Sequence record: MK250017.1
Strand: one strand, 5' to 3'
Length of the DNA stretch: 64,000 nucleotides
Shown: positions 1,561-63,096 of the stretch, piece by piece
Layout: each line of letters starts with the position of its first letter
How positions within the stretch are numbered: position 1 is the stretch's first letter
Translations under genes and position numbers: made by a program
The notes under the pieces: generated by a model
The model's database searches: none
Seen by the model: the letters and a program-made list of their open reading frames with translations, nothing else
What the model was told of the DNA's origin: nothing

Positions 1561-2922
1561 TTATTTTGAAATATTCTTTGAATACTCTTCAATAAGTGTA
1601 TTCAAGAACTTCTGTCCATCAAATCCAACATTAAGGAACTTCAATAACATTGGTGAATAACCAGACATAAAAATATTTCCATACTTATCTGTCTCTGGTG
1701 ATGTCGTATTTCGAGAATTGAAATTCCACCAAACAAGCTTTGTATGCATTCCATTCTGCTTGAAAATATTCATCATCTCATCCTTTGTTTGATTTGAACC
1801 GCTATCAAACTCCATATCTGATAATACGACAATCCAATCTGGTGCATTCGTTGAATCAAGTTCCTTCAGCTTTGCGCATACAGCGCCAAAGTCTGTATTA
1901 GAGCAATCACCAGTATACATTGATTCAAGTTCTCTCTTATACTGAGATTCCTCAAAAAGATGTTGCTTTGAAAATTTTGGTGTTGTTCCCCAATAACCTC
2001 CGCGTACATAAGTATTTTCTACACCAAGCTTCAACAATACAGGGTGTGAAGAAAAACTCAAAACCGTATCTGGAGCATATGTTGAACACTTTGCAAGATA
2101 ATGACCTACTGCTAAAGCCTTTCCATAACTATCATTACTATCTTGCATTGAACCAGAAGAATCTACAACAGGAATCCAACTTCCTGAAATCTTTTCAATC
2201 TTTGAAAAGAACAAATCAGGATCAATCTTATCACGATTCTTATAAATGTCATAAACATTTGTAGTAGAAACCTTCAATTCTTGCTTACCTGAACGAACAT
2301 CTTCCAAATACTTTTGAAACCTTACCTTTGTATCTTCACCTGTTGAAAATCTCTTAAAATACTTAATCATTGCAAGTGATGGAACCTGTGAGAAAATAAT
2401 CTCTTCCGTTCTATGTCGTGACAACTTATTTTCTGTTGTATCAGACTTAATAAAATGTCCATAAGTCTGCTTATTCATATGAAACTGCTTTGCAATCTTA
2501 CGAGCAAGCATAAGATTCTTAGATGAATATCTAGGCATCCACTTCTTACAAAGTTCATTTCCTGACTTAATTTCACTATACAAAAATTCGCACATTTTTG
2601 CAAATGAAATTTCTCCCATCGATTCCCATCCAATAAACAAATCATCGAAACGACCAGCTTTTACTACATCAGATGGTGTTACCTCGGTCAATAACATAAG
2701 ACGACGACCAAGTTCACGTCTACCCAATCCAAAACGAGGATCTCGCATCATCATGGCAAACAACTTTGCAGTCATAGAAGTACCAATATATGGAATTTCA
2801 TCAAGATGCTTACCATAATATTCTGACATAAAGAGAATATCCAACATAGGATTCATTGTAGTGTTATATGCATTATCACCATTCTCTGTAGTCTTCTTTG
2901 CAAAAATTTCTTCCAATGTCAT
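1561..2922 (-). CDS. DUF2828-family TROVE/Ro60-like protein with C-terminal vWA domain
   Basis: N-terminal TENGDNAY..LDILF, RDPRFGLGRR, GRFDDL, KWMPR, VPSLAM motifs; vWA motifs VVDSSGSM, LSDMEFD, VWWN; no in-frame TAG. Confidence 0.75.
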   Translation of the reverse strand: MTLEEIFAKKTTENGDNAYNTTMNPMLDILFMSEYYGKHLDEIPYIGTSMTAKLFAMMMRDPRFGLGRRELGRRLMLLTEVTPSDVVKAGRFDDLFIGWESMGEISFAKMCEFLYSEIKSGNELCKKWMPRYSSKNLMLARKIAKQFHMNKQTYGHFIKSDTTENKLSRHRTEEIIFSQVPSLAMIKYFKRFSTGEDTKVRFQKYLEDVRSGKQELKVSTTNVYDIYKNRDKIDPDLFFSKIEKISGSWIPVVDSSGSMQDSNDSYGKALAVGHYLAKCSTYAPDTVLSFSSHPVLLKLGVENTYVRGGYWGTTPKFSKQHLFEESQYKRELESMYTGDCSNTDFGAVCAKLKELDSTNAPDWIVVLSDMEFDSGSNQTKDEMMNIFKQNGMHTKLVWWNFNSRNTTSPETDKYGNIFMSGYSPMLLKFLNVGFDGQKFLNTLIEEYSKNISK

Positions 2923-3030
2923 AATCTTTTCTTTTTAAATTTTGTTATTACAAAAGTTGTTTAAATATTAATTACCAAAAAATTATATTAAATTAAAAAT
3001 TGCGGACTTAACTTTCATTTTTAATAACAA

Positions 3031-3109
3031 ACAAGAGTCTATTTACCATATCAAGGATTATCTTACAAATAATATATTTTCTAATTAATTTGCTGTTTTG
3101 ACTCTCATG
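3031..3109 (-). ncRNA. ACAGCAA stem / anticodon-loop element A (undescribed motif)
   Basis: Minus strand ATGAGAGTC-AAAACAGCAAATT...aatcc-TTGATAT-ggtaa-ata-GACTCTTGT; first 22 nt match 62024-62045 at 21/22. Confidence 0.55.
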
Positions 3110-3801: not shown

Positions 3802-6800
3802 TTAAACTAAAATACGAATTGCATGTTTTGGTAATTGTGTTACTTTACCTGCAACTGTACAATCTACAAGGTCTGTATCATCTGTAGTATCTACATATGA
3901 CTTAGGATTTACTTTAATCTTACGTAATGGTTCATCATTTTCAGAAGCAATTACAGCAGGAATCCAATCTTCAACATCAATGTCTATATTGTCTTTATGC
4001 CATGTTTCTTCTTTATCACCTACATAAACTCTTACGTCATCTACACCTTCTAGAATATCTTTGAGATTTGCTTTAAATCTTTCACCATTCAATGTATTTT
4101 TCAAAACCATTGAATCTACTACAATATTACATTCAACTGTTTTTCCATTTAAATCCGCCATTTTTTCAGCTTTAGGATTTTCTGGTGTTTTATTTAAATT
4201 ATTCTTATCGAATTCAAATTGGTCTGGTGTATTGTCAATATCCTTAAATTGTGAAGGATCTGGTTTAATATCCTTTGAAGTTACATCAATTGTTTTACCA
4301 TTCTTTGTAATTTTCAAATTTTGTTTATCACCAGTTTCTTCATCTACTGCAAATACAGTCCAAGGTTCATTTTTATAAAGAACTTTATCATTTACTTCAT
4401 ATTCAATAACAGCTCCTTCTTCTAAGAAAGGATTTTTGTTATGTTCAGTAACAAGATTTACATTAGGAAGTTTTGGTTTTACTGCTTCATTTTCATCCTG
4501 TTGTGGATCTAATGCACCGACTAAACCATCCTTCTTTTGTTTATCTTCAATTTCCTGTTTAAAATCATTTTCTTCTTTTGTTCCATATTTAGCGTCATTC
4601 GCTACTTTAGAATTATCAATATCATTATCGGAATCGACTTTTGTAGAACGTTTAATCTTACAATTTTCAGTTATATACTTATTATTACTATCATAAGATC
4701 TTCCTGTTAATGCACTGAATATAGAAGATATGATAAACATACAATCATCACTATCTGTTATGTTATAAGATGTAAGTTGTTCACCTTTATCTGCATAATC
4801 GACTTTTAATGATTCTATTGTTTGTCCAGGAACTTCATCTTTGAAATCTTCAATTATTTGATAAAATTCTTTTGCATCACGGTAATAAATATCTGCACCA
4901 ATTTGGTAAATTGCATATGATTCAGAATCACCAGATTCATAATTATCAGAAATAATAAAATATTTTACTGTATCAGAATCATGTCCTTCTGTTGCTAAAT
5001 CAGTAACTATAACATTATTTCCGTCTTCATTTGCTTTTTCAGCAGATTTTATTGCCTTTACCTGCATTTTACTTAATGTATCATAATCTGTTTCTTCATT
5101 ATAATCTTCTATTGGATTATTACCAGTAGAATCGGATGTAGAAATCTCGTTTGTGGTACTTCCATCAATTATCTCTTCTGTGAGAGGAGTACCTTTCTAA
5201 TCCTTTGATTTAGAAGCCTTGATGGTAGCTTCATTTAAGAAAAAACTTTTACCCACCTTATTTTTAAATACAGGAGTAATCTTAATAGACTTATGTTCTT
5301 TAAGTGGTTTCTTTACCTTAACCTCTTTTGATTCTGGAATTTCTGTTCCGTCTGCAGAAGGTGCTGGTAATTCAATTTCTGTATTTCCTGATTTATATGT
5401 AGGAATAATTACAGTTTCTTTATCATCTGAATCATCGTCCTCGTCGGAATCATCATCATTCTCATCTTCATCATCAGTTATATCAGACATTTTAAAACCA
5501 AACATATCATCGTCAGAATCATTATCTGAATTATCATCATCGTTCTCATCTGATAACTTTGTTAATGGATAATCCCAATCGTCATCATCGTCATCATCAT
5601 CTGAATCTAATTTCTGAGAATATTCTTCACGATCTTCATCATTTCCATCTCTTAAATATGCTGCTTCCCAATCATCATCGTCGCCATCATCATCTGCAAG
5701 TTGTGCAGCAACAGTTGGACCTACTTCTTCATTTGCAGGTTCAGCAGTTTCACAAACATCACTATAATCAGGATGATTCTTAATTGCATCAATAACAGCG
5801 GCATAAAGTTCATTTGTCATAGGTTCGTTATCAAGAATAGGATTATTATCATCATCCAAGTAGAACTCAATTGTCTTGTTCTCCACATACTTCTTACCTG
5901 TGCCATCAATCATAGGAACAATTACAATAACAGAACCTGATTTTTCTTTCTTACCATCCTTAACATTCTCATCAAACATTACATCTGCAATTTTATATGA
6001 AAATTTAGGTTGATATGTTTCTTCTTTCTCATCTTCAACTGTTTTAGGTGTATTAGCTGGAATATCTTCAATTTCAGAATTTGTTCCAAGTGGATCTTCT
6101 GTATCACCACCAAATACATCTGTTGCTTCATCACCAGGTTCAGCAGTTTCATCATCATCTGAATTATCACCCATATCAACAGTTGTCATTGAATTATATG
6201 TATCTTCATCATTATCTTCTGATGCAGTTTCATCATCATCAGAATTTACAAATTCATCTTCATCATCTGTTTCTGTTTCATCAGAATCTTCTGGTTCAAA
6301 TATATCTTCATCATCATCAGTAGAATCTGAATCATCTGAATCATCATCAAAATTAACTTCCTTAAATGCTTCTTCATCATCTTCATCTGAATCTTCTTCA
6401 GAACCAAATACATCATCTGAATCATAGTCATCATCTGAATCATCAAAATCAGTTTCATCTTCATCTGAATCGCTGTCTGCATCAATTGCATTAGCTGCTG
6501 CATCATCAAATCCAGTACCTTCAGAATCTTCATCATCATCTGAATCATCTGAATCATCATTTGAATCACTACCAAGGAATTTTGCAAATTCATCATCAGT
6601 AACACCTTCATCTGACTCTTCATCATCAAAATTATCGGTTGCTTCAGAATCACCGTCTTCACCACTTAATGGTTGTGAAAGTTCATCTTTTGATGCATCA
6701 ACTTCTTCATCAGACATTGGTTCATTTGGATTTTCCTTTGTTACTGTACCATCATCTGTTGAATCATCATCTGTTGTTTCGTCATCATCTGTATCATCAG

Positions 6801-8859
6801 AATTATCTTCACCTGTTACATCATCTGCTTGTTTCTGCCATTCCTTATATTCTGCCTTAATATCATCAAGTTTCTCTTCTGCATCTGCAATAGCTTTTTC
6901 AAGTTTCTCCTTATTTTCATCAGATGCAGATTCAAGAGCTTTATTAAGTTTTTCAATCATATCCTCATACTTTTCGATAGAATCTTCATACTGATTCTTT
7001 GTCTCATTAAGTTTAAGAATAATCTTATCTTGAGATGGAAGTAAATCACTGAATAATGATGATACATTAATACCCATATGTTCATTTAACTTATTCTTAC
7101 AGAAAATAGGATTTACGTTTCTGTAGAATGTATGCTGACCAATCGCATCATTATGTGTTGCAATGAATATATTCTGATCAAGTTTAAACAAGTCTGCATT
7201 AATATTATTATTCTCATTAAGAGTTACATGCTTAGCCCAATCAATCTTTGCAATATTATTGAAATTCTCCAATAAACAAGAACACATAATATAGAAATTT
7301 GTATCATAATCATCATACTTCATACACATTTCACGAAGATTACGAAGTGTTTCTTTTGATTCTTTATGTCCATAAATATCAACATAACCTTCAAAAATTG
7401 TTGCATACTTATCATTACTATGAAGGATAATATGATCTTCATTTATTTCAACATGTGGATCATTTACAAGACGACAAAGTTCAACAAATCTCTCATCAAG
7501 CTGATCAACAAGTTTATCTTCTAATACAGCAATGTTATTTCCTTTCTTTACATAGAATTGACCGTTAACATTGAAAATTGCTTCATTTTCCTTAACATAC
7601 TGAACAGGCGTATAGATATTAGAAACTGATGCATTTTCTCTAATAATATTAATCTGATCTTTAATATTTAATGCTTTTTCTGTAAGTTCATTCGCTCTGC
7701 GAGAATTATCTGAATAGATAACATTAAACATTTCATTGATATAAGGATCAGAAGCATATGGCATCAACGCATTACGTAATTGAACTCTGTTAATAGCATT
7801 AGGTTCTTTTACATAACGAGCAACATCTTCTTGAATAAGGTCTACATAAATGAATGAAGAATGATCATCCTTCATTTCCTCTAAAATCTTAGTAAGTGTA
7901 ATTTCTTCACGTTTTGAATCTACCTTTTCAGTAATAGACTTCATTGCCTTACTAACAGGAAGCAAATAATTAAATTTAGATACATTCTGAAGGAATGTTT
8001 CATAAAGTCTCTCTTCATATGCACCCTGATTAATAGCATTAGAATAAAGATTAATAACTTCCATAAGACGCTGATTAGATGAAGCGTCTGAATGACGAAT
8101 ATTATTAATATGTTCGGAAAGATTAATTCCTTGATTATTTGCAATAGCATTTAAGCAGAAATCATCTTTTTCTGTTAAACGTGCTTTTTCATCTTCATCA
8201 AGTTTCTCATCAATATAACGTTGAACCTTTGAGAAAATCTGGTCCATTGTTTTCTTATCACGTTGTTCCTGAAGTTTCTTTTCAAAATTCTTTACTTCAG
8301 ACTCATTAACATAATCTGCATGGATAAAATTAGCAGACATAGAAGATTCTTCAGTAAGAAGAATATTTAATTTAGTTGCAACTGGATCACCATCTTCTAC
8401 GAGTGGAGACAATGCTTCAACAAGATTATCCTTTGTTTCTTGACATTTATTTGCAACATATTGATTATACAAATATTTGATATTATCTTTTGTTAAAGGA
8501 TTCTCAATCTGTTCAATAAGTTGATAACCGACAAGATTTGCTCCATCAGTTGCCAATGTATTATTCATCTGTTCAATGACAGTCTTAATAGATTTATTAC
8601 CTTTTGCGTATTTAGCAAGTCCTTGTCCAAACTGCTCAAAAAGCATAAAATCCTGAGCACCATTTACAAGTGCATTATTATAGTTAACCAAATAGCTCAT
8701 TAATTCGGGATTCTTATGTCCCTCTTCAATAAGTCCATTTACATATCTATGAATATTGAACTTAGTGGTACCATCGAAGTTTTCTGTATCTCGATTAAAA
8801 CTTTCTTGAATAATATTACGAACGCCTTCTAAAAGCTCGTTTTTATTTAATTTTCCCAT
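3802..8859 (-). CDS. Very large acidic protein, 1685 aa (probable head-associated/scaffold-like)
   Basis: Track ORFs 5197-8859 and 3802-5067 are in the same frame, separated by one TAG (5197-5199) and 43 sense codons; long Asp/Glu-rich tract and repeated L/V-N-E motifs. Confidence 0.75.
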
Positions 8860-8931: not shown

Positions 8932-10302
8932 TTAAACTATTAGTATTGAATCACTTACACATTTATTTTCAGTATTATAGTGATCTCTTAAAATTAATTT
9001 TACTATTTTTGTATTAACCTTTCTTGGATAAACGAAACATTCAAATTCTATAGGATTATTTTCATCTATCATAAAATTTTTAAGATTTAATTTAGCTGGA
9101 ACTTCCTTTAACTATCCTTTATTATCTTCATATGATATTATACAGTCAACTTGTGGTTTTGCTGTTATAAAATATCCTTTATTTAATACATAAACAGTAG
9201 ATTCATCAACAATACGTGTTTCTGGATCCGGATACATATAAATTTCAGGATTTGTATAAACTGTACATTCATCTGTATTAGGTACTAAAATATCAATACG
9301 AGATGGATTCTCAATAAAATCTAGCGGTATTCTCCAATGATAGAAATTATGATTATCGACTGAATCTAGAAGAAACTGTTCACCTTTATCATCTTCATAT
9401 AAAATATCAACTTGAAGAAGATCTCTATCTTGATATGAATATTTCCATTCAACAAGAAGATCTTGTCCAGAAACAAGAATCATATCTTCAAAATCAGTTA
9501 CCCAGTGTAATGGACCTGTTATTTTTTCTGGATGTTGTCTATTTACCCATATAGCATAACCCATATTATTAATGGCATTATCTGCAGGTCTTTCATTATA
9601 TCTGTCAAATATAGGTTGATATGTTTCGCACTATATTGTAAATGGAACCTTTATCATCGTATCAGACGGTAACTGTCCGAATGTATAAGTGCCTCCTGCA
9701 GTTGGTTGATATGCAGATTCTGGAAATCCTACACGTACAGGTACAACAGTTCCTTTATAGTTTATATGAAATGTTAAATTTTTATAAAAGAATTCTCGAT
9801 ATGCCTGATTTATTTTCATTGCTTCATTCATTGTTGAACAACGAATTTCTACATTAAAACTATATGTTAACGGCATAGAATATAGATATGAAACATATGA
9901 TTTAAGCTTACCATTTTCTCTGCGCGTATATTTTCCCATTACAAATCTGTTTGTAATGTTTCCTGATTCTATCTATACACTTGACATTGATAAACGTCCC
10001 TAAGGATAAAAATCGAAATTACCGTCTATTTTTTGTAAACCTATATCAGTACATTCATCACTTGTAAAATTCGTATAATTATCTTGAATAAACTTTTCTG
10101 AATTTTGATTTGAACCACCGAAATCATAAAAAAATGGAACACAAACATTTTCTATTCCTTCTTCTGTATCATCCCATCTCTATTCGTAAAATAATCTTCT
10201 ATTAAATACTTTTAATAAACCTACGAGAATAGCTCTATCAAAAACATCTGTTGTGTTTCTTGTTTCAAAAAGCTATTTAGGTGTTAATTGTGTTTTTGAC
10301 AT
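8932..10302 (-). CDS. Putative neck / tail sheath stabilizer (T4 gp15-like), 456 aa
   Basis: Track fragments 9631-9939 and 9112-9564 join across TAGs from ATG 10302 to TAA 8932; VPFFY..EKFI and MPLTYSFNVEIRC segments resemble gp15-type proteins. Confidence 0.5.
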
Positions 10303-11559: not shown

Positions 11560-14500
11560 TTATACTTTATTATTAACATTTATATATTTAGTAAAAGCAA
11601 AAGTATCACTATTATTACTAGATATATTATATTTATACATATATCTAATATAGAAACTACTTAAACCATAATATGTTTTACCATCAAAAGATGTTGGTGC
11701 TGGTAACTTAATACCATTAAGATCTAACGATGGAATCTAAAATTTATTTGTACTAGTAATTGTTGGAGTATATATGTTCTTTGATAATATTTCATTATAA
11801 TATTTATGAGTACGTGGTAATGTTGATGATGTTGTATGATCACTACTATTGTATAAATCTATATCATAAATTGAACAGTCTACATAAATTAAATCTTTTA
11901 ATACTGGTGTAGCTACACTAGAATCTCTATACTACATTTTCATATTTATAGTTACACCATTCTATATACTAGAATTTGTTGAAATTATATTGTTCAGTGA
12001 ATATGTTGTATCGTAACATATATCAGTATAAAAATCAGTTATATCTAATTCAACTCTAGTATGCTTGATAGACGCTCTAGTTGATGAATTAGCAACTGGA
12101 TTTATAGATAATATTGCTGTTTTTTGTTTTGTATTATATTTCAAAGTACCAACTTTTGCGTACGTTGTTTTATACTTTGTTGCACTACCATTTGAATCTA
12201 CATATGTATATTTTTCAGTGATTTTTATAGATGAATTTGTTGTATCTAACTAATTTATATCATTATTTAATAAATATAAAAAACTTTTTTGTGGATTAAA
12301 ATCACCTCTATAAAATTGTATATTACCCTCACTATATGTTTTAAATGAAATATCATTATAACGTACAAATTTAATATTTACTTTACCATCCCATCTACCA
12401 CTATACCATGTCATCCATATATCAAAATTTAATGTTATATTCAATTTACTTAAATTAAATTCACTAAGTAATTTCTTAAAATTAATTGCAATTGATTCAT
12501 ATCCACAACCATGTGTATTATCACCACTAAATGCTATATAACTATATACTTTAGTACTCTCATTATCATTTGTTTGAGCATAACCAAATGAATTTTTACA
12601 TAAATCTACATCTGTATCTGCTATTATTAATGAACCATTATCAGATCTAGTTAATAATGTCGCAGTATCCAAATCTTTGCCACCACTCCATTCATATACT
12701 AATCCAAATATATCAAATGCTGGGAAAAACTCACTATCACCATTTTGAACAATATCTTTATCTATTGTTTTTTGAATATCTCCATTTTTATATGTAACAG
12801 ACCAATTTCGCTTAAATAATTTGTCTATATTTATATCTTCTACTCTTGCAGGAACGCTAAATATATATTCAATCTAATAATCTGTTATCGTAGGTCCAGA
12901 AACCTTTGTTGGAGTATAACTCATAAATCCCTCAACTTCAGTAGATTCATTTAATACTAAATCTGTTGTAACATGATTTCCCTTTATATTAGGATCTGTT
13001 CCTACATAACCATAATATATTATTTTACACTAACCACCTGATTTAGGTATAGGGTCTGGCTCATTTTTTAATATTAATTTTATATCACCTGGTTTTTGTG
13101 TAAAACTTATAGACTTTGATTTATCTTGATATTTTACTGTAAATTTATATGTAATAGTATTTGCAGTTGTATTTGATGTAAATTTATATTTTCTACTTAA
13201 TATTTTATATTCGTTATCTTCAGTTACTTTTCCGTCTGTTGACATAAAATTAAGTCCATCCCCAACTGTTTCATTTACAAATGTTACATTTTCTTTTTCT
13301 ATTACATGTTCTTCATTTAATATTCCAAAATAGTTTATTGTTTTTATTTCGCCTACAGGATTAACAATATTTTGTTTTGACTAATCAGTTTCGCTATCAA
13401 ATATAGATACATCAAATGTTGCTCCTTCCTATGTTATTGATAAATTCGCCGGAAGTTTTTGTCCATTTAAATTATAACTACATTCAAATTCATATGTTAT
13501 AGGATCTTTAGTTTTATTATCTTTAACTGTATATACTTTTCCATATTCACCTTGTAGTAATCCCGAAGGTGGTGTTGATAATTCAGTTAATCTGTTATTT
13601 CCATTTTCATCTTTCGTTTCATCTTCATTTGTCTGCGTTATACTAAAATTATTAGACTATACATATGGATAAATTTTGTCATCATTATCTTTTTCTACAC
13701 TACATATAACAGTTATATGTGATGGTGATAATGGTGATAATGGTGATAATGTAAGAGAATCAAATTTCGCGTTTAACTTATAACTTGAACTACCCTATGT
13801 ACATGTTAATGTTTTTTTATGTTTATCATCTCCAAATTGAATAATAAATTTATATGTTTTATTACTTGTTGTGAGATTTGGACCTATAGAATAATCAAAT
13901 GAATATTTTTTTGAAGTACTATTATATGAAACAATAAAATTATTTATTCCCGGTTTAAGTTGTGTACTATTTAATTCAGTAATTAAGCTATATATAAAAT
14001 TGCCTATTGCATCTTTACCTAAATCTATTATTTCACCATTATTGTATTGTAGATAAAATGTAATTTTTACTGTGTCACCTTTATTACTTATTTCAGGTTT
14101 ATCTATCTCTGCATTTAATGTACATTTTTCATCTCTACCAAATGATGTTCTTATTACTGTTAAATCATTTGTCTTTGTGTTATCTTTATCAATACCATTA
14201 TAACGATAATAAAATTTATATGTTTTATTCTCTGGTTCATTATAAAGATCAGTTAAATTATACTCTGATTTATATGTATTTAAACTTGAATCTAATGTAC
14301 CTCTATCAATCTAAAAAGTATTATTATCTATAAATTTAAAATATTCAGACTATGTTGGTTGTAATTCATCATTTAATAAAACTCTAACATGTATGTTTTG
14401 ATTTGAATGTGGATACCCATTATATGTTATAATTGCACTACTATCTGTACCATTATTCGTTATTGTTCCTGCATTATTATTATCAAAAAATGCAAGCAAA

Positions 14501-17500
14501 TCAAGTGAAGCACCATCCTAATATATTTCAATTCTATTATTATCATTATCCGTATAATTAGTAAATGGATTCCATGTATAACGATAATCAGTTCCATTTA
14601 TATTATCACTAATAAATTCATATTTTATAGATTTAGTTATTTCTCGTTTTAATAAGTCATCATTTTTATTTACTTTAAATGTAATTTTTAAATATGATGA
14701 ATCATTAAACGTTTCTTCTCCTGCATTTTCAAACGCATTATTATCAATAGTTATATCACTAATATTTACAAAACCTCGAAAATGTGTTTTATCTAAATCT
14801 ATATATGTTTTGTAACTATTACCGTAAATATAATTAGCATCATCTGGTAACACTATCATAAATACAGTTCTATAATATAAAGTTACCGGATAACCTGTTG
14901 CTGGTATTCCGTTATCAGTAGTACCTATTTTTAATATACTTTTATTATTGTTATATGATGAATCGTTATCAGATCTATATTGAATATATGTACCATTTAA
15001 TGTATTTTCATTATCTGGTGTTGTTTTAATTTCAGGCTTATAAATATTTAATATTTTGTAAATATATAACTTAGTATTTATAGTACTATAACCCTACTTA
15101 TACATAAATGCATATGTTACCCTACCCGGACATATATATCTTAGTATTGTAATTTTACCTCTATATGTATAATCTTCTTTATTATATGTTGGATTTTCTT
15201 CCGCATATGGCTATACATCAACCTAATTAGCTACACTAATTGAAAACTCTTTTACCTAAAATTTTGATAAATCTATTTTTTTAAGTGAGCCATCATCTTT
15301 ATTAATTTCGCATACATAACATTTATAATAAAGTATATTATTAATAAATGGTGATATATATAATTTTTTTGGTTTATACTCTAATAAAGTTGAATAGCTA
15401 CTGTCTTTGTATAATTCTACATATATCTATAAATATAGTTGTTTAATATCATAATAATTTGTTGAATCATGATATTTTATTTTAATACGAAATATAATAT
15501 CTTTAATAGTAGTTATATCATCTCCATCCATTTTCTATGGATCAACTTTTATAATAGACTATGATTTATTAAGTAATTTTCTATTACCTTGTATCACATG
15601 TATATAACCTGGTGTATTATCATTAGTTGTATATGTAAAATATACATTATCAACTGATGTTTCTAAATGTTTATCTAAATAACCATCTTTAATAATACCT
15701 ACACTTATTACTTCAAATCTATCTTCACCTAATGCTGATACATAATTTGATCTTGGTCTGATTTCACATGCATATACTACTGATTTCTATGTTACAACAT
15801 GAGAAACTGTTTTTGAATTATATTTTACTGTAAATGTTAAACGTCTATCTACATTTTTATCATATATATTTTTACATCTTATATTACTTGCAACTACATA
15901 ATTAATATTTTCATATGTTATAATTTCATATTGTATATCTAATAAATTAACATCATCATTATCACATGTAATTGTATATAAATTTACATCTTCTATTGTA
16001 ATTCCTTTTTCGTTATCAAACGCTCTAAATGCTAAAATTATATTATTATATTCTGGTATACCTCCAATTTTTTCTGTACATTCATCTTGTTTAATTGCCA
16101 AATCAATAGAAAGTATGTCCTATGTTAATTTACATGAAGCTTGTAGAATATCAAGATTATTATCCATATTAAAATTTATAGTCTTTGTAATAGAAGCACG
16201 TTCATTTCTATCAAAATTAATATCTAATATATATTCATCACCATTTAATGTAACATTATTATATAATACACTGTCAACTAATGCATTTATTGTATATGTC
16301 GTAGAAATATTATTTTTTATATTTGTAACATTTGTAATCTTTACAGAATTCTTTTTATCAATCTCTATTATACCATAATAATGCAATCTTATTGTTTCAC
16401 CAAATGCAGAAACATTATATGTTCCATTAGTAGAAGGAGTTTCTGCTGTATTTCTATCTAAATATTCTACGTAATACTATAATTTTATACTTGATTTATC
16501 TTGAATTATTTGTTTTACTGTACTTTTTAATTTATTAGAACCATTATCATATACTACGTTAACATATAAATATCTTTGCTCACTTGTATAATTTTCATCT
16601 ACATTTATAGTGGTTTTAAATTCACCATCAACATATATAGTTTTAATTACACTATAATTAATCTAATTCTATGTATTACTATATGAAAACTCTAACTATA
16701 AATTATCTTTAACTTCTTTTGACTTAACATTAATACCATCTGTATATGTACATTTATATGTTAATATTCTATTATCACCATTAAAAATTACAGGATTCGG
16801 TTTATCTATATCTAACGTAATAGTATATGTATTAACATTCTATATTATTGATTTTTGTTGATTAACTTCATTATATTGAGTTTTAAATATTGCTTCAAAT
16901 TCTAACGTCTTCTAACTACTTATATTCTCATCTATTAAATATACTAATTCTACTGTATTGTCAGATGAATTAATTTTTAATGACTTTATTTTATTTTTAT
17001 CTAATAAATTACCATTTAAATTTAATGTTACATTAGACTAATTTCTTTTATTTAATACTGCCCAATATTTTATATGGATTTCCTGTTCATCACCAGATAT
17101 TACACCTCCATCTTTATTTAAATGTCCATTCTACACTTCTGTAGGAATAAACTCCAAATGAACTTCAATATTTTCTTTTGGGGCCTATGAAACTTTTGCA
17201 TATATATGATTTATAGGTGTTAAACTCTATACATTATTACGTACAGCAAATTCCATTACATCTTTACGTAATTTTTCTGTTGTATTATCACTAATAGATG
17301 TAATGATTAATTTATTGTAATATTTTAAAGCCTCATTTGTTTCGCTATCTTTTTCACCTTCTTTTATAAATTTATACCCTGTAATCCAATCAGGTTTATA
17401 TATACAATTAATATCTGATGTAATAGGTATATAATTCCATTCTAATACAGCATAATAACCTGTATTAGTCTCATTAAATTTATCTGCAGGTAATAACGGT

Positions 17501-17550
17501 AATATAATAGTATCTGATAAAATTTTATGAAATTTATTATTGCTCATCAT
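11560..17550 (-). CDS. Large virion structural/adhesin-like protein with Ig/BACON-like beta repeats, ~1995 aa
   Basis: Manual scan found no in-frame TAA/TGA between 17550 and 11560 but about 30 TAG; six track fragments share this frame; Thr/Asn/Tyr-rich beta-strand repeats; BACON-like PDWIT...DNTTEKLR segment at the N-terminus. Confidence 0.7.
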
Positions 17551-48057: not shown

Positions 48058-51000
48058 ATGGGAAAAATTTCTATTGACTTATCTACTATAAAATCAGCAG
48101 GTATTTATACTATAGAAATCGATAACTCACAACGTGAGGTAACAAATCCTACTTCACTTCGTTTGTTACCTGGTTTTAATAATAAAGGTCCTTTCAACCG
48201 TCCAGTATTTATGCAGTATGAATCTGAACGTCAGAAGATCTTTGGAGATATTGATAGTAAGCTTGAGTAGAAAGGTTGTTTCTTTAATAGAATGGCATAG
48301 ACAATGCTTAAGAACGGTCCTATATTGGCTCTTAATTTGTTAAAAGTTGATGATTCAATTGATGGTCCAGACCAGGTAAACTATGCTACAATGTCATTAG
48401 ATTCATGTAAGCCAAATCCTAAAGTTACAAGCGCAGGAAAAACTTATGGTGAATATGATTATCAGGCAGCAACAATTAATAATAAGTTATATGGTTCAAA
48501 ACAGGGTGATGTAATTCCTTATGTAGGTAAAACACCATATGCAAGTTTGTTTGACCGCGCACGTTTCTGGATTCCTTCTAAGAATAATCTTCAGGCTGTT
48601 GCAGCTAATGGTTTATTGAGTAATGATCAGGGTTCATATGAACATACTAATTTACTTAATTTTGCTAATACAGGTACTGATGAAATTTCAATTCTTGTTT
48701 ATAAACCAGAAAATGTTACAGGTTATAATGTAACTGCAAAAGAATGGTGGGGTGGTGATGAAAACATTCCTTATGGATGGATTCGTCCATCTGATTATAT
48801 TTCAGATTACTTTATCCGCGTTGTTGCAATTAAAGGTAATTGGACAAATTATCCAGTTCTTGCAAGTGATCCTATTTGGAGTAAGTATTTCGATAAGAAT
48901 GGTGTAATTAAGAATAAAGTTTCATCATTATGTTCAGCAGAAGGCGTAACATTTATCGGTTCTTGGACAGGTTCAATTATTCCTGACTTTGTTGATAAAC
49001 AAGGTAATTATATGTATATTGAATCAAAGGTAAATGCAAATACAGAACGTACTGGTCTTTTGATGTCTGTAAATGAAGATGCTCTTCAGGTTATTTCATA
49101 TGACAAGAATGGTGTTGATATTGAAACAGGTAATGAAAACGGTACAGGTACATGGGTATTTGATTTTGATGGAAATAAACAAGCAGAATCAGAACTCGGT
49201 GAAAGTTCAATTAATGAATCTGGTTATCTTGTTGATATGGTTGGACATAATTTACAAAATGGTATTTATGCAGATAACTATTATTTAAATCTTGCCCATC
49301 CATTGTCAAATGAACAAAAACTTCCAGATGAGTCTGTTTTATGTTATACATATTATTTCCAGAAAACACAGGCTAGTTGTACAAAAGATTTAAATGCATG
49401 GTGTATGTCATTTAATGGTAGAGATACATTAACAGCAGAAGATGATGTAGTTCCTGCAGCAAAAATCAGAGTGCTTTATTGTAAAAATCAATCAATTGAT
49501 ACAAAGAAATTTGTAAAGGCATATTCAGTATATAATGCAGAAACAAATCAACCTGTTAAAGCAAATAATTCTAAATATGGTGCAAACTTCTATATCATGG
49601 AAGAATATAATGTTGATGAAAAGAAATCATCATTATCTACAGAGCTTTAGAAATGTTTAACAAAACCTCTTACTGATTTAACTAATGAAACTGGAAAGAA
49701 AACATTAGAAGCGATAACTACAAAGCTTAAGGGATTACCTGTATATGCTCAACCTAATTTAAAGGTTTCATATAATATAAAAGATGTTGTGTATAAACTT
49801 GATAAGAATAATAAGTTTACTGCACAGCAAGCAACAGTCGCAGATGTAATTTCAAATGATGCAAAATATCTTTATATTAAAGAAGTACCTGTAACATCTG
49901 ATACAAATGATAACTATGTATATGAGGATAAGACCATGTATTATGGCACATACGCAATTCCTGTAGTACCAGCTCCTAGAACCGAAATCGTTGCTGATGC
50001 TGATAATACAAGCGATAAGGTAGAAGTTAAGTTATTCTCTGTAATAGCAGGAACTAAAGCAAATTCATATGCAATTATTCATGATTTAGGAACAATTACT
50101 ACTACAACTGCAACTAATAAGTTAATTCCTGTTGAAATTACAAATTATAAGGATTCAAAAGCAGATACAGGTACTAGTGCAAAAGCTCAAGGATTTACAT
50201 TCAGCTATGGCGGAAATGATTACTTTGTTAGAGGAATCAGTGCAATACCACAAGCAGGAGGTATTTATACAGCTATGTATAAACTTGTTAATTCTGATAC
50301 TCCAACTTATTTCGGTGTAAACTTTATGTCTTATAACTATATTACAGAGCATGTAAGTGAAGTTATTACAAATGCATATAATGCATATTACTTTAATGGA
50401 TATAAGAATACTTCAAGCGTTGCAGCAGCGGTTAATTTACAAACTACAGATTTATATGATGAAGGTACATGTCCAGTAACAGATACAAATTTAAATTCAT
50501 TCATTATTACTAATGAAACAGAAGCAAATAATATATCTGTAGGTGATTATGTAAATAATATTTCATTCTATAATAATGTTGGTGAAGCAGAAAAATATAA
50601 TTTGATTCCAGGTATTACACGAGTTATTACAAAGGTATTCGTTAATGTTGATGCTCGTAATGAATTCTATTATAAGGGTTCTAAATATCATATTAATATT
50701 GGAGCACTTGGTGATGGTAATTTAATTGAAACAACTGCAGGTAAGAGAGGATTCTATTTGTTCACAACATTAGATCCTGTTTATATCAGTGATACTAATT
50801 ATGTTGTTCGTCAGAAACCAATTACAGATGATAGTATTTCACATAATTTGAAGTTTATCCCTCTTAAAGGTTTGCATATTTCAGCAAAACACCGTCCAGG
50901 ATTTGATGAATATGGAAAACTTGATATTGAAGGTGGTATTGAAAAGATTTACTCAATGCTTCAGGATGATGGAATTCATAGAGGTCTTTGTAATCCTAAT

Positions 51001-51915
51001 ATGGTTGATTACCGCTATATCGTTGACTCAATGTCATATGGTTTAACAAATGAAATGGGTGGTAAAAAATATCTTTCTATTCTTGCAATGGATCGTATGA
51101 AAACAACCGCATTACTTAATCTTCCATCTAAGAGACAGTTTGAACTTTCAGTTGATCCTTGTTTCTGTGATACATATGATCAAGGTGTTTATACAAAACC
51201 TTCATTTGATACTAAATATATACCACAAGGTGGTAATACAGACATGTACTCAACTACAATGTTTAGCTTACCTACTGAAGATGATGGTTCTAAGTTTGCT
51301 GCTGCATTCTGGCCTCACTTAGTATATAATGTAAATGGACGTAAGATAAATGTACCACCTGCAGCTGATGTTTGTGATGTTCTTATTCGCAAATTCAATG
51401 GTGGTGATCCTTATGTAATTGCAGCTAATAGAAACGGTATTATCAAAAACTCTGATGTTGTTGGTATTGAATTCAATGCAGATACAACAGATAGAGATTA
51501 TCTTGAACCATTCGGTGTTAATACTATTATTCAGGAAGGTAATAATATCCTTATTTACGGTAATCAAACATGTTATCAGAATACTAAGAGTGACTTTAAT
51601 AAGTTACATGTTCGTGAGAACCTTAATACTCTTGAAATTGCATGTGAAGATGTACTTAAGAGATATAACTTCTTATATAATACACCAGCTGTTCGTGCTT
51701 CAGTTGTTACTGCACTTACACCAATTCTCGAAACAATGAAATTGTCTAACGCAATTGAAAGTTATGAGATTATTTGTGATGAGTCAAACAACACACCGGA
51801 CATCATAGCTGAAGATTATGGAATAGTCGACATCAGCGTGATAGTATCTCACGGAATGGAGAAGATAGTGCAACGTATTACGTTGAATCGTAGAGATACA
51901 TTACAAGATAGATAA
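48058..51915 (+). CDS. Contractile tail sheath protein (gp18-like), 1285 aa (code 15)
   Basis: Three track fragments join in frame across 3 TAG; N-terminal SAGIYTIEIDNS..GPFNRP; C-terminal GVNTI..YGNQT..LHVRE..YEIICDESNNTP..VDI. Confidence 0.85.
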
Positions 51916-59736: not shown

Positions 59737-60744
59737 ATGGAAATTAAATAGTTTACAGATGATACATTAAAACATGTATTTGACACATGTACATCAACAA
59801 TGAATATATTGGAATTATTAGGTTATGAACCTTATAAAATAAGAGGATAGAAATGTAAAGAAATATTGAATATATATGCTAATTAGATTGGTGTCAATAT
59901 AGAAGATTATAAATCAAATAATATAAAATTTAGGAAATATAATGAATTACATCCTGTATGTAAAATATGTGGTAAAGACTTAACATATAAACAGTATAAA
60001 GATAAACAATCTTTTTGTTCATCATCATGTGCAGCTATTTATAATAATTAGCATAGAACTATTTCTAAAAAACAAAAAAGTATATTTTCTAAAAAATAGA
60101 GTATACGTTCTAAAAATGTTTATAAAGAAAAACCTAATTATGTATTAAATACGGAATTAATTAATCAAGGAAAAATATTAAATGATAAAAATATTCCATA
60201 TAAAGAACATTATATGGATATAACAAAATTAGGTGTACATATATGTCAAATATGTGGAAACGAATTTATACCATCTATTACATTAAAAGGTGATATATCA
60301 AAAGCTACAACATGTTCAGAAGAATGCCATAAAATTTTAGCAAGCAAACGTTCAAAACAAACTGTATAGCGTCTTATTAAAGAAGGCAGACATAGTGGCT
60401 GGGCATCTAGAAAAATTACAAGTTATCCAGAAAAATTTTGGATTAATGTATTAAATAATAATCATATAAATTTTATACGTGAATTTAAAGTAAAACAAAT
60501 TTCAGGTTATTGTTATTTTTTGGATTTTTTGATAGAACACAATGAACATAAAATTGATTTAGAAATAGATGGACAACAACATAAGTATAGAAAAGAACAT
60601 GATAAAGAACGAGATGAATATTTATCATCATTAAATTATTTAATATATAGAATTGATTGGAATAATATAAATACAGAAAATGGAAAATTATTAATGAAAG
60701 AAAAAATTGATAATTTTTTAAATTGGTTTAATAATTTGGAGTAA
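59737..60744 (+). CDS. Homing-type endonuclease (Vsr/DUF559-like) in tRNA cluster, 335 aa (code 15)
   Basis: Zinc motifs CKICG..FCSSSC and CQICG..TCSEEC; SYPEKFW..REF..YFLDF..LEIDGQQH..DKERD..IYRIDW. Confidence 0.75.
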
Positions 60745-60758
60745 AATTATTAAATTTA

Positions 60759-61104: not shown

Positions 61105-61654
61105 CATTAATTATTTTGATAAAAAATAAGAGAAATATATAGACTTTTATTTGATTTCAACATATACATTATGTTAATTGGATGAACAGTTAATAATTAA
61201 TAATTAATAATAAAAATACTATTAAAATGTGGGGTTTTGAGTGCCCATCATTTAAAGAGTTTCGAGAAGAAGACATTGTATGTAAAAGCATTAAGTTTCA
61301 TTTAGCTGATGAAATGTAGTCAAGCGTGATGGTATCGATGTACATGGGTCCATCCGTATAACTTCGAGGAATCATAAGCATTAATCTTGGAGAGTACAGT
61401 TTTTAGTCTGAAATGACGAATTTTCCTACTGGTTGCTCAATATGACATTAAGAGTCGGAGATAATTATTTGTAAGTTCCACAATTACAAGAGGAAAATGG
61501 AATTAAGTTGTCGGAATAACGTGATTATTCTATGTGCGAGTAAGAAAATGAAAGTAGCATTATATGTATGGTGTACGTATACATATAGAAACAAAGCAAA
61601 TAATAACCCTTAGAGAATTTGCCGAGAAAAGGACATTAATAGTATTTATAATTT

Positions 61655-61725
61655 GCGGGTATAGCACAATGGTAGTGTTCCAGTCTTCCAAACTGGCAAT
61701 GTCGGTTCGATTCCGATTACCCGCT
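61655..61725 (+). tRNA. tRNA-Gly(TCC)
   Basis: gcgggta/tacccgc with U73; ccagt-CTTCCAA-actgg; T loop TTCGATT. Confidence 0.95.
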
Positions 61726-62023
61726 CAAAGATAAAATTAGGTATACATAATTTTGTATCGAAGCTTTATATTACCATTAGTCGTAATATTCAAATCGTTC
61801 GTTGACATGGTTATTCCGTGATGTTAGTAGTAAGTTATAATCAATTTATAGCAAACGGAATATTAATAAAAACGTACTCGGCGTTTAAGTTGAATGTACC
61901 ACGCTGCCCGTATTGTTGACATTTAATTAAGTATTTAATTAAGTTGAAACATATGTTTAAAAAACTTATGGTACCACGAGTGTTTTCTACGTCGTTTCAC
62001 TCATTTTTTTGATATAATAATAT

Positions 62024-62083
62024 ATGAGAGTCATAACAGCAAATTTAGTTCTATTGTTTATTGGGATAACATAAGACTCTTGA
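62024..62083 (+). ncRNA. ACAGCAA stem / anticodon-loop element B (Pro-like UGG loop)
   Basis: ATGAGAGTC-ATAACAGCAAATT...tgttt-ATTGGGA-taaca-taa-GACTCTTG. Confidence 0.55.
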
Positions 62084-62097
62084 ATCAATTATATTAG

Positions 62098-62159
62098 GGG
62101 AGATATTACAGCAAATTATTATTTAGGATCATACTTTTAATATGAAATTCTTGTCTCCT
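62098..62159 (+). ncRNA. ACAGCAA stem / anticodon-loop element C (Lys-like UUU loop)
   Basis: GGGAGATA-TTACAGCAAATT...tcata-CTTTTAA-tatga...TGTCTCCT; perfect 5-bp + 7-nt anticodon arm. Confidence 0.55.
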
Positions 62160-62167
62160 GTTTATTT

Positions 62168-62247
62168 GGGTAAATGCCTGAGTGGTCGAAGGGAATGGTC
62201 TGCAAAACCATTATTATACGTCGTGTGTTCGAATCACACTTTACCCT
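62168..62247 (+). tRNA. tRNA-Cys(GCA) with enlarged variable region
   Basis: gggtaaa/tttaccc with U73; atggt-CTGCAAA-accat; ~11-nt variable region; T loop TTCGAAT. Confidence 0.85.
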
Positions 62248-62576
62248 CTAATATAAAATATTTCCGTGGTATACAGCACGTAAAAAGAGGTTGACTTGTA
62301 TATTCTATAGACCTACTGTATAATAATATATATGATGTACATGTGAAACACCATGTTCTATTAAGAGTTTAATAAAACTGTGGTTGTTATTAAATTGCAC
62401 TGATATTAGATGCATAATATATGATGAATATAATGACGGTACTGTGAAATGACTATTATTTTTAGTTGCTTGGAAACGGCGTACGAAGTTTTTATAATAG
62501 TGGAAGTAATGATAAAACAGTTAAATGTAAATCTTTCTGAGACAATGGGGACAACTTGTAGTAAGAGAGTATTTTT

Positions 62577-62680
62577 GTTGATATAGTTTAATGGGAAAAC
62601 ACCCAAATCCCAGGGATAAGAGATAATACTTTGAAATAGGTATTAGAAGATTTTAGATGGTTCGATTCCATTTATCAACT
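62577..62680 (+). ncRNA. tRNA-like RNA 1 with expanded anticodon domain
   Basis: Acceptor gttgata/tatcaac, D arm gttt-aatggga-aaac, T arm gatgg-TTCGATT-ccatt; 54 nt between D and T arms. Confidence 0.6.
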
Positions 62681-62689
62681 CAAATTAAT

Positions 62690-62810
62690 GAAGTGTGTAG
62701 TTTAATTGGTAAAATATCCTTTGAATAGGACTGTGCGCAGATAGAACATAATGTTAGTCATATTAATCGCATTATTGATAATGATGTTGGTTCGATTCCA
62801 ACGACACTTC
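62690..62810 (+). ncRNA. tRNA-like RNA 2 with expanded anticodon domain
   Basis: Acceptor gaagtgt/acacttc, D arm gttt-aattggta-aaat, T arm gttgg-TTCGATT-ccaac; 69 nt between D and T arms. Confidence 0.6.
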
Positions 62811-63096
62811 CTAATAAATAAAAAGATCTCGGTAATTAGATAAAACATTATATGAGTGAAGCAACTCACCATAACTGCAGATAAATGAGTGAGGGACATA
62901 AGAGTGTATGAAGAAAGATGGACTATGGACACCACCATATAATTGCGTTTTCAATAATAGTAAAGTAAACTTTAGTATAAGTTCCATTAACGCTAAAATA
63001 GAAACATTGTTATTGAAGTCTACTATGCGTGCGATGGTTGAATGAAACCATTGTAGTTCTAAGGCATTGTAAAACGTTTTATTTATTAATTTTTAT

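Follow-up and report, generated by a model that had tools for sequence, protein, structure and literature searches.

The stretch analysed here (the window), 64,000 nucleotides (nt) of sequence record MK250017.1, carries a minus-strand gene for a DUF2828-type protein of 453 amino acids (aa) together with three small structured RNA elements, E1 directly upstream of that gene and E2 and E3 in a distant tRNA cluster. Based on our analysis, the protein and the three elements probably form a ribonucleoprotein (RNP) of the Y RNA type, and this RNP may act on the tRNA pool. The protein fold, the RNA architecture, the covariation of the RNA stem, and the co-location of elements and gene on a shared strand are computed results. 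The window belongs to Prevotella phage Lak-A1: TBLASTN identified the window protein with 100% aa identity at positions 50241-51599 of the Lak-A1 record (MK250015.1; 541,664 bp), whose source is human faeces.

Protein and RNA elements in the window

Pfam assigned the 453-aa protein to DUF2828 (E = 1.3e-10) and DUF7788 (E = 1e-9). The first-pass annotation of this DNA, made from the letters alone, had called it TROVE/Ro60-like from its motifs, and the predicted fold bears this out. The AlphaFold2 (AF2) model has a predicted local distance difference test score (pLDDT) of 87.7 and a predicted template modelling score (pTM) of 0.85; Foldseek aligned it to the PDB with Ro60/TROVE structures at all of ranks 1-13 (E = 3e-8 to 5e-5, probability 1.00). 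Using VIA, the top 10 PDB entries were likewise all Ro60 (Z = 14.6-9.6), whereas isolated vWA domains scored below them (Z ≤8.7); these matches run over the full length, and the best of them, the Ro60 of Thermus phage phiLo (9KOP; Z = 14.6), covers 382 residues between model residues 6 and 452. Based on this model, the Lak-A1 protein is a divergent Ro60 homologue, predicted to form a TROVE-like helical ring closed by a vWA domain with a MIDAS (metal ion-dependent adhesion site). The modelled kinship is structural and distant: the assignment comes from fold comparison, and a sequence profile alone gave none.

The MIDAS residues D254-x-S256-x-S258, T337 and D369 are invariant among 41 homologues. 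Homologues of the window protein make up at least 1898 clusters at 90% identity in the protein collection searched, and TBLASTN identified homologues in 629 of 50,697 phage records, among them phages of Escherichia, Mycobacterium, Salmonella, Vibrio, Listeria, Staphylococcus, Campylobacter and Prevotella. The same search reaches a mycobacteriophage protein annotated as “Ro-like RNA binding protein” (24.5% identity, E = 3e-12). DUF2828 is also present in plants and has been reported in mimivirus-like sequences (10.1101/033464).

As the first-pass annotation had noticed, a 22-mer (ATGAGAGTCAWAACAGCAAATT) recurs about 59 kb apart with the same closing stem. It occurs at exactly two sites in the window (3087-3108 on the minus strand and 62024-62045 on the plus strand), with agreement at 21 of 22 positions; none of 100 dinucleotide shuffles contained a 22-mer matched twice in this way. 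Both copies are closed by GACTCTTG, at 3039-3032 on the minus strand and 62075-62082 on the plus strand. These two copies, E1 and E2, share with E3 a common plan, in which a terminal stem encloses an interior that varies and ACAGCAA is left unpaired next to the 5' strand of the stem. In E1, the 5' strand AUGAGAGUC (3108-3100) pairs with GACUCUUGU (3039-3031) to give 9 base pairs (bp), two of them G-U, and a linker AAA separates the 5' strand from ACAGCAA. E1 lies on the gene strand, and its 3' end precedes the ATG at 2922 by 109 nt, in agreement with the distance of about 110 nt given earlier. E2 has an E1-type stem (UGAGAGUC/GACUCUUG) with ACAGCAA at 62036-62042. The stem of E3 (GGGAGAU/GUCUCCU) is unlike those of E1 and E2, but E3 shares ACAGCAAATT, with UU-ACAGCAA at 62106-62114, and ends in CUGU (62158-62161). 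E2 and E3 sit between a tRNA-Gly and a tRNA-Cys gene, on the tRNA strand, and only 7 nt separate E3 from tRNA-Cys. Positions are collected in Table 1.

Table 1. Positions of the protein gene, the RNA elements and associated features in the window
Feature	Position	Strand	Basis and remarks
Ro60-like protein gene, 453 aa	1561-2922	-	Open reading frame (ORF), Pfam, AF2 model, Foldseek, VIA
N-terminal helical TROVE-like part of the protein	~residues 1-245 of 453		Followed by C-terminal vWA domain, MIDAS intact
Possible promoter of the protein gene, TTTG-N17-AACTTTTG, Bacteroidota type	2947-2980	-	Read by eye
E1, small structured RNA element	3031-3108	-	Model R2, 36.6 bits, E = 4e-5; 78 nt ending UUGU
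ACAGCAA of E1, unpaired, beside stem 5' strand	3090-3096	-	Invariant across the family
Hairpin AUUAU-UUGUAAG-AUAAU in E1, anticodon-arm-like (GUA)	3057-3073	-	Read from sequence; low confidence
Weaker alternative hairpin in E1, CC-UUGAUAU-GG	3056-3046	-	Loop UUGAUAU at 3054-3048, 2-bp stem
E2, second element, 58 nt	62025-62082	+	Model R2, 31.8 bits, E = 4e-4
E3, third element, 64 nt including CUGU	62098-62161	+	Model R2, 24.9 bits, E = 0.011; RF01414, 33.7 bits
Hairpin UCAUA-CUUUUAA-UAUGA in E3, 5-bp stem	62129-62145	+	Present in the minimum free energy (MFE) fold
tRNA bracket: tRNA-Gly (61655-61726) and tRNA-Cys (62168-62248)	61655-62248	+	ARAGORN, Rfam

The MFE of each single element is no better than that of shuffles (z = -0.3 to -0.9, not significant), so structural support comes from comparison with other phages. 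No covariation emerged for E2 and E3 from the near-identical Lak genomes G001 and G005, and their cluster is absent from more distant Lak fragments. In Lak relatives at 80% protein identity, the stem and motif of E1 persist upstream of the orthologous gene, as does the promoter-like block between E1 and the ATG. The anticodon-arm-like hairpin of E1 is not kept in these relatives, and one related contig is 12 nt shorter there.

The RNA family in other phages and its interiors

We assembled 70 non-redundant homologous loci (421 kb) and used the opposite strand and the reversed sequence as controls. ACAGCAA occurs 217 times on the gene strand of these loci, against 20 occurrences on the reverse complement and 15 in reversed sequence; when a stem of ≥7 bp ending 0-3 nt before the motif is also demanded, 165 occurrences are found on the gene strand versus 3 and 4 in the controls. 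Of these 165 elements, 143 are close to the gene (no more than 300 nt upstream or 1 kb downstream of it), most of them downstream (121 versus 22 upstream) and in arrays of two to six. The first-pass annotation had named co-occurrence with DUF2828 genes as a check; 64 of the 70 loci have one to five adjacent elements. The motif ACAGCAA, with core CAGCAA, is present in all family members, and the constant module consists of a 6-9 bp stem that joins the two ends, a closing C-G pair, 1-3 nt, and the unpaired ACAGCAA. Upstream of metagenomic-phage homologues, the same plan is built with other stems (e.g., TACACGC-AT-ACAGCAAATT...GCGTGTA); because the stems differ between copies, the elements are not a spreading repeat.

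We built a covariance model, R2, from phages other than Lak. It was seeded from four elements of equal length, because MAFFT misaligned the 3' strands of elements of unequal length, and then rebuilt from 40 matches. Searching 356 kb, R2 found 79 matches at E ≤0.01, all but one on the gene strand. In the R2 alignment, 99.8% of stem cells are paired, and six of the seven pairs show changes on both sides; the stem covariation score is 0.82, compared with 0.26 for shuffled alignments (0 of 500 as high) and ≤0.15 for slid partners, and all 77 of 77 sequences have C-G as the pair adjoining the motif. This alignment is model-fitted and favours pairing, whereas the strand and position controls are independent of it. 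Although built without Lak sequences, R2 ranks E1, E2 and E3 first to third in the window with filters off, the next match (20.5 bits) lying inside an ORF, and the three are the only matches at E ≤0.1 in the complete Lak-A1 genome. Two further window matches were set aside as chance: 4917-4982 (minus strand), which reads ACAGUAA and lies inside ORF 3802-8859, and 17236-17272 (plus strand), which is antisense inside ORF 11560-17550.

Within the reach of computation, the suggestion of a family of RNAs accompanying a Ro-like protein holds: elements whose terminal stem covaries flank homologues of the gene and share its strand, in phages that infect hosts from at least five phyla, and motif and stem are kept from Bacteroidota to Actinomycetota phages. 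Other jumbo phages without an element beside the DUF2828 gene carry elements 50-90 kb away, in tRNA clusters and on the tRNA strand; the placement of E2 and E3 between tRNA-Gly and tRNA-Cys follows this pattern. The family is large and widespread among phages, and we did not find it described as such.

All 10 cultured phages examined that encode the protein also carry elements, beside the gene or in tRNA clusters. Staphylococcus phage S-CoN_Ph4 has three in tandem directly after the gene (E ~1e-5); Listeria phage LP-125 has three upstream of the gene and, 1.3 kb downstream of it, an RtcB-like ligase; mycobacteriophage MS810 has three downstream; and elements adjoin the gene in Campylobacter phage CP81, Escherichia phage HY02 and Salmonella phage Felix O1. 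In Salmonella phage SE_PL, five elements lie in a tRNA cluster and an RNA ligase gene adjoins the protein gene, and the elements of Vibrio phage PC-Liy1 and Aeromonas phage Ahp1 are also in tRNA clusters. Synechococcus phage B3 has a variant core, CAGCAA/CAGCCA; the CAGCCA copies beside CAGCAA copies indicate that the motif core can vary, and the model misses such variants. T5, phiKZ and SPO1 have neither protein nor RNA; T4 lacks the protein, and its one weak element match, inside the coding sequence (CDS) of gene 31.2, was taken as chance.

RNA ligase or RtcB genes are occasional neighbours of the protein gene. Among 150 flanking ORFs, no recurrent protein partner was found; RNA ligase appeared twice, Thg1 once and EF-Tu once, and the rest were ordinary phage genes. 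Pfam gave no match for the immediate neighbours of the protein gene in the window. A search of Lak-A1 for T4 Rnl1 found none, and genes with a PF09414 ligase domain (four above cutoff) are far from the protein gene. No protein neighbour recurs, so that the protein and its RNAs together resemble a stand-alone module linked to tRNA genes.

The interiors of the elements vary with their length. Short members (50-90 nt) have 7-nt anticodon-arm loops such as UUUGGGA, CUUUUAA, CUGUUAA, CUGAAAA and YUGCUAA. Loops identical to anticodon loops of the phages' own tRNAs number 38 among the 166 elements in which no tRNA was called, versus 1.5 in shuffles (maximum 5), and such loops make up 10% of element hairpins versus 1% in the rest of the loci. 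Members of ~110-135 nt contain ~50 T-loop hairpins altogether; their parts are arranged as small hairpin, T arm, closed acceptor-like hairpin, U8A9, D arm, which is the order of a permuted tRNA. About 10 elements enclose a tRNA in normal order (Phe, Pro, His, Asp, Cys or suppressor), whereas 166 of 176 enclose none.

The description of the RNAs as anticodon-bearing holds for about one-fifth of the family, whose loops are identical to real anticodon loops, but the best case in the window is not one of the two loops that had been flagged. It is the 7-nt loop CUUUUAA of E3, which equals the tRNA-Lys(UUU) anticodon loop, is enriched in the family and identical to loops of real phage tRNAs, and has its stem extended by AGGA/UUCU (62125-62128/62148-62151). 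The flagged loops, UUGAUAU in E1 and AUUGGGA in E2 (62060-62066), are present, each 8 nt before the 3' strand as described, but their stems are weak (2 bp in E1; 4 bp plus a mismatch in E2). We did not adopt the UUGAUAU “Ile” loop as a feature, because its stem has 2 bp, nor the 8-nt spacing as a rule; no sign of it was seen in the family, though spacing was not measured.

Known counterparts, proposed mechanism and alternatives

No Rfam family reached its gathering threshold on the window elements. At a permissive threshold, the model for Dictyostelium Class I RNAs (RF01414, Dicty_Class_I_RNA) matched E3 over its full length (positions 1-56) with 33.7 bits (E = 5e-5 locally, 3.1e-5 for the whole genome), below the gathering score of 41.5; E2 was unmatched in the stretch searched at E ≤10, and the E1 region, scanned only at gathering thresholds, was also unmatched. 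One element of another phage (L035, 4253-4325) scored 41.8 bits, above the gathering score, and RF01414, which contains amoeba sequences only, recovers elements beside DUF2828 genes in other phages. In the alignment of E3 to the Class I consensus (GaUcuC-CUUACAGCAAU...CCUU-GagAuC-UG), ACAGCAA is common to both, and agreement reaches 8-9 of 11 motif positions once the linker U and closing C are counted.

A terminal stem of 6 bp that shows compensatory changes, an 11-nt motif left unpaired next to the 5' strand, and a remainder that varies define the Class I RNAs, which start with AAG, end with CUGU, and are reported as unique to Dictyostelia (PMC7919456). Based on sequence and predicted structure, the phage RNA family closely resembles them. 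The unpaired motif follows directly after the 5' strand (CCUUACAGCAA in Dictyostelium versus C-(N)U-ACAGCAA in phages), the remainder is variable, the length is about 60 nt, and several different copies are clustered. The CUGU end is found in E3, and Aeromonas phage Ahp1 reads AAGGAUGC-UU-ACAGCAA...GCAUCCUGU. Class I RNAs measure 42-65 nt, compared with 58 nt for E2, 64 nt for E3 including CUGU, and 78 nt for E1, which ends in UUGU, the phage RNA ends being predicted. Unlike the amoeba RNAs, the phage elements belong to phages of bacteria and have no Dictyostelium upstream sequence element (DUSE) or RNA polymerase III promoter; E1 and E2 are unmatched by the Rfam model, and long phage relatives carry tRNA-like inserts. 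This likeness, and that to the permuted tRNA-like domains of YrlA RNAs, had not been drawn in the first-pass annotation.

Y and YrlA RNAs are encoded no more than 4 kb from the Ro60 gene, on the same strand, and canonical Ro60 binds the Y RNA at conserved nucleotides in the 5' strand of its stem (PMC4201824). The phage elements are similar in being small RNA loci a few kb from a Ro60-type gene, on its strand and often several per genome, with a short conserved motif near the 5' end beside a stem of 5' and 3' ends; the phage relatives of ~115-130 nt also share with YrlA the order V, T arm, closed acceptor stem, D arm. The phage motif differs, however, being ACAGCAA and not GNCGAA(N)G, and the phage protein is of the DUF2828 type, which Pfam does not recognise as TROVE. 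The YrlA model (RF02553) matched only the tRNA-like core of the long relatives (positions 23-87, 28-38 bits versus a gathering score of 69) and found nothing in the window, where E1-E3 have neither T nor D arm.

The Ro60 of phage phiLo binds two Y-like RNAs encoded upstream of its gene, each with a stem beside an unpaired CGAA, as determined by electrophoretic mobility shift assay and cryo-electron microscopy (PMC12135203; 9KOP, 9L5Y), and a link to host polynucleotide phosphorylase has been proposed (PMC12135203). This protein is phage-encoded and 463 aa long, and it is the best structural match to the Lak protein; its RNAs likewise have a 5'-3' stem beside a conserved unpaired motif. The two differ in that profile search found no sequence similarity, the phiLo motif CGAA sits in a bulge, and no tRNA or anticodon mimicry is described for phiLo. 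As for tRNAs themselves, some interiors are like anticodon arms (7-nt loops, U33, R37, 5-bp stems) or T arms and lie among tRNAs, but E1-E3 have no cloverleaf and no acceptor end, and neither ARAGORN nor Rfam RF00005 called a tRNA at any of them.

We infer that E1, E2 and E3 are transcribed as discrete RNAs and bound directly by the protein; they would be genes for small partner RNAs of the Ro60-like protein, counterparts of Y RNAs. By analogy with the GNCGAA and CGAA motifs of Y RNAs (PMC4201824, PMC12135203), ACAGCAA is a putative protein-binding site, and the protein would recognise it together with the closing C-G pair, as Ro60 recognises GGUCCGA or GNCGAA on the 5' strand of Y RNAs. The variable interior would then be the functional end, or “cargo”: in Lak-A1 short hairpins, one of which is an exact look-alike of a tRNA-Lys anticodon arm, and in relatives a permuted or complete tRNA-like domain. 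Enzymes that bind tRNAs may meet tRNA-like surfaces on such cargo, which would tether them to the ring or serve as a decoy or gate. The presumed beneficiary is the phage tRNA pool, for example through tRNA surveillance or repair or by countering host defences that cleave tRNAs.

Several results weigh against this reading of the elements as Y-RNA-like partners in an RNP. On the protein side, Pfam TROVE (PF05731) was unmatched, DUF2828 and DUF7788 being the sole Pfam families at E ≤0.1, and a profile of the 41 homologues found no Ro60 among PDB sequences. On the RNA side, the known Ro60-binding motifs GGUCCGA, GNCGAA and CGAA are absent from the elements, and the interiors of E1 and E2 have weak hairpins and are not kept even within the Lak group, that of E1 diverging in the 80%-identity relatives; for Class I RNAs, the closest known RNAs, the only protein reported to bind one directly is Rnp1A, which has an RNA recognition motif and is not Ro-like. 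With respect to genome context, E2 and E3 are 59 kb from the protein gene, no RtcB was found in Lak-A1, and the neighbour genes are heterogeneous, with no conserved effector pointing to a function. The region is present in contigs of three metatranscriptomes, which carry no starts, ends or strand, and one contig spans 1886-2947, covering the gene without E1. That contig's end at 2947 would fit, weakly, an mRNA start at the promoter-like block, contigs not marking transcript ends.

Such a start also bears on a different explanation, in which E1 is a cis-acting operator or leader whose stem-ACAGCAA module is bound by the protein or another factor to autoregulate the gene, E2 and E3 being free RNAs or competing sites. 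E1 does lie a short distance upstream on the gene strand, with stem and motif kept around a poorly conserved interior, and in PC-Liy1 an ACAGCAA without obvious stem stands 27 nt before the start codon, after a good sigma-70 promoter. We nevertheless consider this explanation unlikely, given that at most loci the elements are downstream and in arrays, that a conserved promoter-like block separates E1 from the ATG, and that one RNA contig ends there; it is also compatible with an RNP and does not exclude one. A DUF2828-independent origin of the pattern, with the elements as processing or stability cassettes of tRNA-cluster transcripts (leader-trailer stems with a nuclease or chaperone signal) linked to the gene through a shared tRNA neighbourhood, would account for the placement of E2, E3 and their counterparts in other jumbo and T4-like phages within tRNA clusters, on the strand of the tRNAs, as well as for the ~10 elements that enclose complete tRNAs. 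It seems quite improbable, however, because arrays in small phages abut the DUF2828 gene with no tRNA found in the stretches examined (e.g., L093, L097 and L080), because neither the protein nor credible elements occur in tRNA-rich T4 and T5 or in phiKZ and SPO1, and because so few elements enclose a tRNA.

There is very little to recommend the view that the similarity reflects a decayed duplication or chance, i.e., tRNA-derived relics or a functionless small repeat. Folding energies of single sequences, no better than those of shuffles, and the AT-rich, variable interiors speak for it, but the shuffles never reproduced the twofold 22-mer, and motif and covarying stem persist across phages of distant hosts.

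Beyond the partnership of the protein with E1-E3, we tentatively propose, as a possibility we rate well below that partnership, that stem-ACAGCAA RNAs and DUF2828 proteins constitute one ancient RNP of phages, giant viruses and eukaryotes. Class I RNAs would then be Y-RNA-like partners of a DUF2828 paralogue of Ro60, possibly DDB_G0281243, and the phage scaffold would be loaded with mimics of tRNAs or anticodon arms; these would recruit enzymes that target tRNAs or serve as decoys for them (host anticodon nucleases or repair ligases, for example). A Class I RNA pull-down also yielded GuaB, NdkC and the uncharacterised DDB_G0281243 (10.1101/2020.04.05.026054).

With these results, DUF2828/DUF7788, a widespread domain of unknown function, gains a candidate partner and a likely activity, and a large phage RNA family is defined at sites currently annotated as small “hypothetical protein” ORFs. 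The Ro60-Y RNA principle would extend to a second protein lineage with another recognition motif and modular tRNA-mimic cargo, and the phage family would be linked to Dictyostelium Class I RNAs, whose function has been open since 2004 and which had been regarded as confined to social amoebae. Tractable phages carry members of the family, including Felix O1, HY02, those of the Listeria LP-125/P100 type, Staphylococcus and Campylobacter phages, and mycobacteriophages.

Further observations in related phages and the window

In S-CoN_Ph4 (L104, 3980-4327), the “hypothetical protein” CDSs CoNPh4_CDS0145 and 0144 overlap elements, as does the small CDS ORF140 of CP81 (L103, 2064-2201); these are probably mis-annotations. 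In LP-125 (L102, 503-1054), a ROOL RNA match of 87.4 bits, near the gathering score of 99.1, lies among tRNAs ~1 kb upstream of the RNA elements and the DUF2828 gene. Phage B3 (L119, 3930-4230) has a 110-nt “tRNA-Pseudo-GCA” between two stem-CAGCCA elements, and in a metagenomic phage (L098, 2899-3009) a stem-ACAGCAA frame surrounds a suppressor-type tRNA with anticodon UUA. The leader ACAGCAA of PC-Liy1 (L120, 2120-2205), before the ATG of the DUF2828-type gene, is downstream of a near-consensus sigma-70 promoter (TTTACA-N16-TATAAT) and may be an autoregulatory site.

Within the tRNA cluster of the window, Rfam identified a 104-nt tRNA match at 62577-62680 (plus strand; 38.9 bits) that has a long insertion and was missed by ARAGORN; a second tRNA-like gene at ~62691-62812 (plus strand) combines a good acceptor stem and T arm with ~50 additional nt that separate the T arm from the anticodon region. 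The insertions in both may be introns or giant variable arms. Spacers of 300-540 nt in the cluster (61110-61650, 61730-62020, 62250-62575 and 62815-63095) have no long ORF or Rfam match and may hold further unrecognised RNAs. Between tRNA-His and tRNA-Pro, an ORF-like stretch with in-frame TAGs (59740-60745, plus strand) may be a homing-endonuclease-like insert.

TAG is read through in Lak-A1: the ORF at 11560-17550 (minus strand) is open for 1996 codons only when its 32 in-frame TAGs are read. The minus-strand ORFs at 3802-8859 and 8932-10302 likewise need TAG as sense (one and six TAGs, respectively), whereas the DUF2828 gene contains no in-frame TAG. That long ORFs of the window are open only with TAG as sense is consistent with stop-codon recoding in Lak-A1.

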